Notes under the pieces: generated by a model
What the model was told of the DNA's origin: nothing
Database searches by the model: none
Seen by the model: only the letters and a program-made list of their open reading frames with translations
Shown: in pieces, positions 45,119 through 45,514 of the stretch
Layout: each line of letters opens with the position of its first letter
How positions within the stretch are numbered: the first letter of the stretch is position 1
Origin: Zancudomyces culisetae HAW-14-8
Lineage: Eukaryota; Fungi; Kickxellomycota
Length of the DNA: 64,000 nucleotides
Reading direction: 5' to 3'
Assembly: GCA_052426225.1 (NCBI GenBank)
Contig: JBNJNM010000022.1
Coordinates: 326,290 to 390,289, forward strand
Translations under genes and position numbers: made by a program

Positions 45119-45514
45119 ATGGTAAAGTCAACACTCGCACTCTTCACTGCCGCAGTTGCCACAGTTTCAGTAAATGCTGCATTCGCCCCAAGACCAAGAG
45201 CAAATGTCGGACCTATGCAACCACCAATGGAACAGGTCCAGGACTTTGGAAGATATGCTCCACCATCTCGCCCTGCCTTTAACAACCGCTTTGCCGCTCC
45301 AGCCTACCGCAAGCGTGCTGACGAGGAGGAGGAAGTTGCACCGGTTGACGATGCTGCTCCAGCCCAGCCTGCTGATGCTCCAGCAGATGGTAGCGAAGCA
45401 GTAGATGAAACTGACGACCGTTGGTGGTACGGACGCTACGGCTACCCATATTACGGTGGATACTATGGATATCGTTACCCATACTACGGTGGATACTACG
45501 GATACTACTACTAG
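45119..45514 (+). CDS. Secreted precursor: signal peptide, Pro/Arg region, RKR site, acidic spacer, C-terminal Tyr/Gly-rich peptide
   Basis: MVKSTLALFTAAVATVSVNA signal, YRKR dibasic site, and ...DETDDR|WWYGRYGYPYYGGYYGYRYPYYGGYYGYYY. High GC, A-rich Kozak context and a TATA box. Confidence 0.9.
   Translation: MVKSTLALFTAAVATVSVNAAFAPRPRANVGPMQPPMEQVQDFGRYAPPSRPAFNNRFAAPAYRKRADEEEEVAPVDDAAPAQPADAPADGSEAVDETDDRWWYGRYGYPYYGGYYGYRYPYYGGYYGYYY

Follow-up and report, generated by a model that had tools for sequence, protein, structure and literature searches.

The final 64 kb of the 390-kb contig C22, in a HiFi assembly of the mosquito-gut fungus Zancudomyces culisetae (Harpellales), hold at positions 45119-45514 of the plus strand an intact open reading frame (ORF), ATG to TAG, for a protein of 131 residues, more than half of whose last 30 are tyrosine. 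Is this ORF a gene, and what could a fungus use such a protein for? A preliminary description of this 64-kb stretch, called the window below, had read the ORF as a secreted precursor releasing a tyrosine-rich peptide, a candidate wet adhesive or wall cross-linker, and had considered a Harpellales gut fungus as the source, which Z. culisetae is. A PacBio-HiFi assembly of this species has been published (PMC12611240). Our analysis firmly supports a real, selected gene for a secreted-type, disordered precursor with a constrained aromatic tail, which belongs to an orphan, mostly subtelomeric family. As to its role, we rank first an extracellular material that self-assembles or can be cross-linked, as part of the wall matrix, the holdfast or the spore coat, and we give this role a probability of about 0.4.

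A tyrosine-rich gene and its family

The gene was modelled as a single ORF, a spliced model being unnecessary, and its parts are the following.

44957-45118, plus strand: conserved core promoter and 5' leader (inter-locus homology, aligned TATA box)
45119-45514, plus strand: complete coding sequence (CDS) of the prepro-protein of the Tyr-rich family, 131 residues plus stop (ORF, NCBI match, paralogues)
45119-45178, plus strand: signal-peptide-like N-terminus, residues 1-20 (inspection, AlphaFold2 helix, family alignment)
45179-45316, plus strand: basic Pro/Arg-rich pro-region, residues 21-66, net charge +6, ending in YRKR (Kex2-type dibasic site, paralogues)
45317-45421, plus strand: acidic spacer, residues 67-101, net charge -13, ending in DETDDR (composition, paralogues)
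45422-45511, plus strand: aromatic tail, residues 102-131, putative released peptide (composition, selection on codons)
45437-45502, plus strand: two tandem 33-nt units, encoding YGYPYYGGYYG and YRYPYYGGYYG (28/33 nt identical)

These parts agree with the preliminary description, which had listed a signal peptide, an Arg/Pro-rich segment ending in RKR, an acidic spacer ending in DETDDR, a 30-residue tail and a 33-nt tandem duplication. Signal-peptide and cleavage assignments were made by inspection and paralogue comparison. Residues 1-20 (MVKSTLALFTAAVATVSVNA) have the n/h/c shape of a signal peptide, with K3, a hydrophobic core 15 residues long and V/A at -3/-1, and the probable cleavage site is VNA↓A (the arrow marks the bond that would be cut). 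AlphaFold2 (AF2) places a helix at residues 3-19, and M1-L6, L8, S17-N19 and A21 are invariant in the family alignment. The pro-region closes with the Kex2-type dibasic site RKR (45308-45316) and the spacer with D-D-R (45413-45421), of which D100 and R101 are invariant in a ten-member alignment. The composition of the tail is exactly Y16 G8 R2 P2 W2 (53% Tyr, 27% Gly). Its two 33-nt units (45437-45469 and 45470-45502) match at 28 of 33 positions, and Tandem Repeats Finder reported at the duplication solely a 9-nt sub-repeat. The net charge of the tail is +2 in the window copy and 0 in most paralogues (range 0-2 charges). Past the signal helix, AF2 gave no fold, with a mean predicted local distance difference test score (pLDDT) of 50, and the whole protein is predicted to be disordered.

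Sequence comparison confirmed that the ORF is a real gene and ruled out a chance ORF, based on a GC content of 48% against about 30% in the flanks, on 99% identity to the NCBI hypothetical protein AX774_g730 of Z. culisetae and on a frame that is open in all 30 paralogues read. Codon use also differs from the surroundings, with a TAC:TAT ratio of 14:4 against about 1:2.5 in neighbouring ORFs. A TATAAAA element lies at 44963-44969, about 150 nt 5' of the ATG; this TATA box (GTATAAAA) aligns in 9/9 paralogues, the most divergent included, and the start context TATCAAAAATG is near-invariant. Homology between paralogous loci begins just upstream of the TATA box and ends at the stop codon, and such confinement indicates a selected transcription unit. 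Two artefactual explanations, a spurious ORF and an antisense ORF, were ruled out by the frame-specific purifying selection on the plus-strand frame; the 123-residue minus-strand ORF is a low-complexity mirror of the Tyr-rich gene.

The preliminary description had suggested looking for paralogues without remarking on a family, and a large one was found. A six-frame search of the genome gave 37 matches, of which 30 loci were read, and all 30 have uninterrupted ORFs of 131-189 residues with a common architecture, at 56-100% identity. Z. culisetae contains at least 30 intact paralogues, and the family includes AX774_g730, g439, g6556, g2535 and g6360. The window protein shares the homologous N-terminal 66 residues, the acidic spacer, a D-R↓W/F junction between spacer and tail, and the aromatic tail itself; the block WWYGYYGYPYYGGYYGY is conserved. 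Two further members are degenerate: C12:1742068 (L051, C12:1740568-1743735), with an internal deletion and a frameshift, corresponds to the partial NCBI entry AX774_g7747, and C15:284146 (L052, C15:282646-285965) is frameshifted and has no start codon.

The family is mostly subtelomeric. Twenty-five of the 30 copies lie less than 85 kb from a contig end, a zone to which 15.7% of the genome belongs (binomial test, P 5e-16, with copies that are not independent), and 20 of these 25 are oriented away from that end. Most of the divergent members are among the five internal copies. Arrays of (CCCTAA)n were present at 9 of the 11 contig starts checked, and TTAGGG arrays were seen for example at the end of C6. 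Short-read assemblies have largely collapsed the family, with 8 family proteins annotated against at least 30 genes in the HiFi assembly. In one public short-read contig, the family gene crosses a run of N (L063:7391-8395) and the annotated 111-residue protein P0005 is a gap artefact. For six paralogues, the window copy among them, the public protein collection had no identical sequence, and public protein sets lack most of the paralogues.

In an exhaustive HMMER profile search over 1.84 billion representatives, the N-terminal region was matched by Z. culisetae proteins alone, and a metagenome scan with the family alignment gave no relatives. On these sequence searches, the family is an orphan one, restricted to the lineage of Z. 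culisetae. With Pfam, the best match of the window protein was DUF6264, at a not meaningful E value of 1.7. A feature search of the ESM Atlas pointed only weakly to one cluster, an oomycete 'glycine-rich protein' (0.82), and this lead was discarded.

Selection was examined through the nonsynonymous (pN) and synonymous (pS) differences per site. The signal and pro-region (residues 1-66) have a pS of 0.14-0.29 and a pN/pS of 0.24-0.54, with 0.35 for the pro-region (residues 21-66), and the 34-codon spacer of the core group has a pN/pS of 0.16. Across paralogues, the first 17 tail codons (WWYGxYGYPYYGGYYGY) have a pS of 0.46, a pN of 0.02 and a pN/pS of 0.05. Judged by these ratios, the family is under purifying selection that is strongest on the tail, and a value of 0.05 indicates that the Tyr/Gly sequence itself, and not just its composition, is the constrained part. 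Tail length varies among paralogues from 26 to 41 residues, mostly by YG-type units, and drops to 10 in L029 and L030. The spacer is 34-68 residues long and variable in sequence, and it becomes an almost pure Glu/Asp run in L029 and L030.

Evidence for a processed precursor

The aromatic tail is a putative peptide freed by cleavage, as the preliminary description had proposed, and several features of the family point this way. The D-R↓W junction is kept in 30/30 paralogues (as NDR↓F in one, L027) and in the second module of L004, despite the divergence of the spacer, and L029 and L030 keep a D-R↓W/F junction though their tails have only 10 residues. In L004, the first aromatic block is directly followed by a second unit made of RKR, another acidic spacer that ends in ETDDR, and an aromatic peptide of 18 residues, a layout such as would be expected of a modular, cleaved polyprotein. 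The end of the pro-region reads YRKR in 27 of the 30 paralogues, YQKR in one and YHKS in two, and the genome contains one Kex2-type convertase (P_proprotein domain, 854-residue open frame, C15:1061245). Since DDR is not a Kex2-type site, a second, different protease must be assumed for the cut before the tail. The proposal of a precursor has thus gained from the kept junction, the L004 modules, the look-alike precursors described below and the Kex2 gene, and it is weakened by the DDR site.

Another explanation could be that the protein is not cut again after signal removal and works in one piece at the wall or surface, as a disordered protein that its aromatic C-terminus would anchor, for example to chitin or through Tyr cross-links, and to which its acidic region would give charge. 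DDR is a poor convertase site, L029 and L030 are intact despite the loss of their KR site (YHKS), and AF2 predicts disorder throughout. Aromatic residues are moreover the usual chitin-binding chemistry and would suit such an anchor. However, without processing it is hard to explain why a single junction motif is kept beside a highly variable spacer, or why RKR stands directly after the first aromatic block in the two-module layout of L004, and we consider a whole, uncleaved protein rather unlikely.

If the tails are released, some of them would be short, with 10 residues in L029 and L030 and 18 in the second module of L004. Short aromatic-ended peptides resemble fungal signals such as Cryptococcus Qsp1, and the released peptide could be a diffusible signal of the pheromone or quorum-sensing type. 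A signalling system would nevertheless have no need of some 30 copies of a peptide that is of low complexity, half Tyr and probably insoluble, and no receptor or processing context was found. We hold this to be the least probable of the roles considered here.

Processing at KR sites recalls the Kex2-processed repeat proteins (KEPs) of fungi, which are secreted precursors, as those of the family would be, from genomes with Kex2, and often lineage-specific and duplicated (PMC6339444, PMC7329392). KEPs are defined by at least three repeated cores bounded by KR/RR (PMC6339444), and KEP surveys count 9 of them for Z. culisetae, without detail. By contrast, the window gene contains a single core with a single KR site, its core would be freed by the cut at DDR, and only L004 in the family has two cores. 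A single-core gene therefore falls outside the three-or-more-repeat definition (PMC6339444).

Closer look-alikes of the tail came from the profile search, in which P0011 gave a tail-only match (E 1e-4). P0011-P0021 are unnamed multi-peptide precursors from eukaryotic environmental transcripts (JGI, MERC; L054 is the JGI 3300009281 contig). In these proteins W..GYG/GYPYYG..W peptides lie between dibasic sites, in the layout RR↓WFYYGYPYYG...PYYW-GKR, with acidic spacers. They have a signal peptide, as the family, with its signal-like N-terminus, probably does, and share with it acidic spacers, an Arg↓Trp peptide start, the (Y)GYPYYG motif and a ...PYYW end, and with L004 the repetition of spacer-plus-peptide modules. 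Unlike those of the family, their peptides lie between dibasic sites of the classical kind and close with G-KR, an animal-type amidation signal, and their N-terminal regions are unrelated. These proteins show that such peptides are produced elsewhere by excision, and on their sequences they are to be taken as analogues or very distant kin, not as demonstrable homologues. A further singleton, P0009 (a Logan contig of 31% GC), shares 18 consecutive tail residues with the window protein at 40/54 nt identity and has an N-terminus unrelated to the family; for this tail, homology and convergence cannot be told apart from the sequence.

Possible roles: material, adhesive or bioactive peptide

In the role that we rank first, the tail peptide would serve as the cross-linkable or self-assembling material named above, and the following route could lead to it. 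The signal peptide would direct the precursor to the secretory pathway, Kex2 would cut after YRKR, and the cut after DDR would fall to another endoprotease, which might be yapsin-like or a trypsin of the host gut. The nearly uncharged Tyr/Gly/Trp peptide of 30-41 residues would then be freed from the acidic spacer that had kept it soluble in transit, and could self-associate. Those tyrosinases of the fungus that have signal-like N-termini may oxidise it to DOPA (3,4-dihydroxyphenylalanine)/quinone or to Tyr-Tyr cross-links, and the product would be a bulk material at the fungus-host interface, such as wall matrix, holdfast cement or spore coating.

What puts this role first is that the tails carry almost no charge and are probably insoluble, that the copies are amplified and near-identical, that the tail is conserved and not diversifying, unlike the nlp-29 cluster (PMC2453101), and that apparently secreted tyrosinases are available. 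Many near-identical genes fit a dosage-driven bulk product. Seven to eight tyrosinase genes were found, with signal-like N-termini at 6 of the 7 loci read. As a separate observation, another P450-fold gene and a tyrosinase gene with a signal-like N-terminus stand about 3.5 kb apart (C8:1436525-1437196 and C8:1440700-1441224). Only two multicopper-oxidase genes were found in the genome, and animal-type haem peroxidases gave no match in it, in a search whose control was uninformative.

Several points weigh against a material of this kind. The cut before the tail would fall at DDR, which is neither dibasic nor a Kex2-type site. Tight linkage between a tyrosinase and a family gene was not seen, the shortest distances being about 23 and 43 kb (C10, C23). 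The wet adhesives of mussels (mussel foot proteins, mfp-3/5) are strongly cationic whereas the family tails carry 0-2 charges, multicopy clustered genes also fit antimicrobial peptides, and the active product could instead be the basic pro-region, which is strongly conserved.

The comparison with animal adhesives, which the preliminary description had drawn for those of mussels, holds in part. Both mfp-3/mfp-5 and the glycine-rich proteins of tick cement are short, secreted, disordered, Tyr/Gly(/Trp/Arg)-rich and encoded by multigene families. The Tyr chemistry of wet adhesives relies on DOPA, cation-pi interactions and cross-links, and mfp-3/5 have an isoelectric point of about 10. The Z. culisetae proteins are, like mfp-3/5, small, secreted-type, Tyr/Gly-rich and predicted to be disordered, and tyrosinase genes are present in the genome. 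They differ from mfp-3/5 and from tick cement, which are strongly cationic, lack acidic propeptides and show no homology to them. The claims of a DOPA adhesive, of dityrosine or of a holdfast or spore appendage are compatible with the tyrosinases, the copy number and the selection on the tail, and the parallel stands for composition and disorder and fails for charge, since the almost uncharged tails are unlike both mfp-3/5 and NLP-29.

A more specific version would be the long-sought holdfast cement of Harpellales, in which neutral, about 50% Tyr peptides coacervate and are cured by tyrosinase into a wet adhesive on the hindgut cuticle, perhaps with the help of the crystallin-like and P450-fold genes described below. 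If true, the chemistry of this fungal glue would have converged on that of mussel and tick cements, and a subtelomeric gene array would encode it. We hold this version to be attractive but speculative and, in this precise form, quite unlikely.

The look-alike precursors also bear on another role, in which the Tyr/Gly/Trp tail, the basic Pro/Arg N-terminal peptide or both would be an antimicrobial or host-directed bioactive peptide in the larval gut, analogous to NLP-29/CNC of nematodes. Indeed, the closest look-alikes of the tail, with [KR]R↓W..GYG/GYPYYG..W-GKR and acidic spacers, have the multi-peptide layout that bioactive peptides typically show. Antimicrobial precursors classically pair a cationic peptide with an acidic propiece that neutralises it, and the PRPR/SRP motifs of the pro-region, which is under purifying selection, recall proline-rich antimicrobial peptides. 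Members of the NLP-29 family are rich in Gly/Tyr and encoded by clustered, multicopy genes (PMC2453101), and NLP-29/CNC precursors are, like those of Z. culisetae, small and secreted, with a Gly/Tyr peptide that has Trp near its ends and with clustered, lineage-specific genes. However, Tyr exceeds Gly in the Z. culisetae tails (about 50% against 27%), their net charge is about 0, and a conserved basic pro-region and an acidic spacer come in addition. Adaptive diversification has been reported for the nlp-29 antimicrobial cluster (PMC2453101), whereas the tail is under very strong purifying selection. Most tails, being uncharged, would be poorly soluble, and the exhaustive profile search found no homology to NLP/CNC, which are nematode and not fungal proteins. 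An antimicrobial or host-directed peptide is therefore a serious but doubtful alternative to the extracellular material.

In the full-text literature searched, we found no paper linking Harpellales to tyrosine-rich proteins, and none naming the molecules with which Harpellales hold on to the gut, lined with cuticle, of larval mosquitoes, black flies and midges. The family provides a concrete candidate, being secreted-type, highly amplified, strongly constrained and chemically suited to self-assembly and oxidative curing, and its peptides are short enough for synthesis. An adhesive role, if true, would give a new, simple, genetically encoded motif for underwater adhesives, and an antimicrobial role would give a fungal counterpart of the nematode Gly/Tyr peptides in the gut of a disease vector. 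Whatever the role, the family clearly exemplifies how orphan genes restricted to one species have expanded at the chromosome ends of a symbiont with a reduced genome.

Neighbouring genes and chromosomal setting

The features around the Tyr-rich gene, and those at other family loci, are as follows.

46206-46513, minus strand: pseudogene of a beta/gamma-crystallin-like four-Cys partner, convergent with the Tyr-rich gene; MVK, then a stop and a further in-frame stop
C8:2106476, C9:68274, C11:35096, C21:3391216, C13:2023588, C7:1088021, C14:608387 and C13:30237: neighbours with the cytochrome P450 fold (matches to a P450 model)
51801-58433, minus strand: full ribosomal DNA (rDNA) unit, small subunit (SSU)-5.8S-large subunit (LSU)
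62192-62310, plus strand: 5S gene

A convergent gene lies about 0.6-1 kb downstream of many paralogues and encodes a secreted-type protein of 130-134 residues with a His-rich stretch and four conserved Cys. It is in place and intact at L005, L009, L010, L013, L017, L020 and L023 (e.g. L010:2524-2919 and L005:2549-2944, both minus strand). Its model has a pLDDT of about 90 over the domain and a Foldseek probability of about 0.99 for beta/gamma-crystallins, with a template-modelling (TM) score of about 0.6 when scaled to the length of the targets, which have a single domain, and this predicts a beta/gamma-crystallin-like fold. In the window, the leader and first codons of the partner pseudogene (46499-46568, minus strand) are an inverted copy, at about 77% identity, of the leader and start of the Tyr-rich gene (45063-45133, plus strand), and from this match the two secreted-protein families appear to have a promoter/leader/start module in common. 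The crystallin-like family has one more match, a weak one, at 48416-48544 on the plus strand.

Eight paralogues, none of them on C22, have a divergent P450-fold match 3.8-7.3 kb to the centromere side. Model positions of about 229-444 alone match, in open frames of 379-658 residues, and in the copies read an intact crystallin-like gene lies between the precursor and the P450-fold match. The gene order suggests a recurring three-gene subtelomeric cassette (precursor, crystallin-like, P450-fold). Two public short-read contigs of Z. culisetae, L062 and L063, carry the precursor and the crystallin-like partner without the P450.

Fungal CYP56/Dit2 makes the dityrosine of the spore wall, and bacterial P450s cross-link Tyr/Trp in peptides that are made on the ribosome and modified after translation (RiPPs). 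With these precedents, the eight P450-fold neighbours and the crystallin-like gene between them and the precursor raise the idea that the cassette makes a RiPP-like or dityrosine-type cross-linked peptide. The precursors of dikaritin RiPPs (UstA, AprA/asperipin-2a) are likewise Kex2-type, fungal and provided with Tyr-containing cores, which are oxidatively cross-linked, although these cores are only 4-6 residues long, occur in many repeats and come from Ascomycota (PMC7329392). A core of 30-41 residues is long for a RiPP. Besides, 22 of the 30 copies, including the window copy and all those on C22, have no P450 nearby, the partner gene is dead in the window, the match is limited to the C-terminal half of the P450 model, and the linkage could be explained by the duplication of whole subtelomeric blocks. 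UstYa/DUF3328 (PF11807) gave no match in the genome, nor in any control genome, so that this search was uninformative. We regard a RiPP-like product of the cassette as improbable.

Contig C22 starts with a telomere and ends in rDNA, so that the end from which the window copy lies 18.5 kb away is rDNA and not telomere; a distance of about 6 kb separates the Tyr-rich gene from the border of the rDNA array. C22 bears three copies with identical CDS, at 42298 (plus strand, L002), 193376 (minus strand, L001) and 371408 (plus strand, L003), the window copy among them. They lie in 3.4-kb segments that are 98.8-99.1% identical, and the sequence points to recent large segmental duplications on C22, one of them inverted.

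Finally, other small secreted Cys-rich ORFs were observed near the paralogue on L062 (LSSK01001328.1), at 2222-2524, 4932-5471 and 11211-11636, and two of them have a C-Y...C..C.G.C motif in common with the crystallin-like partner.
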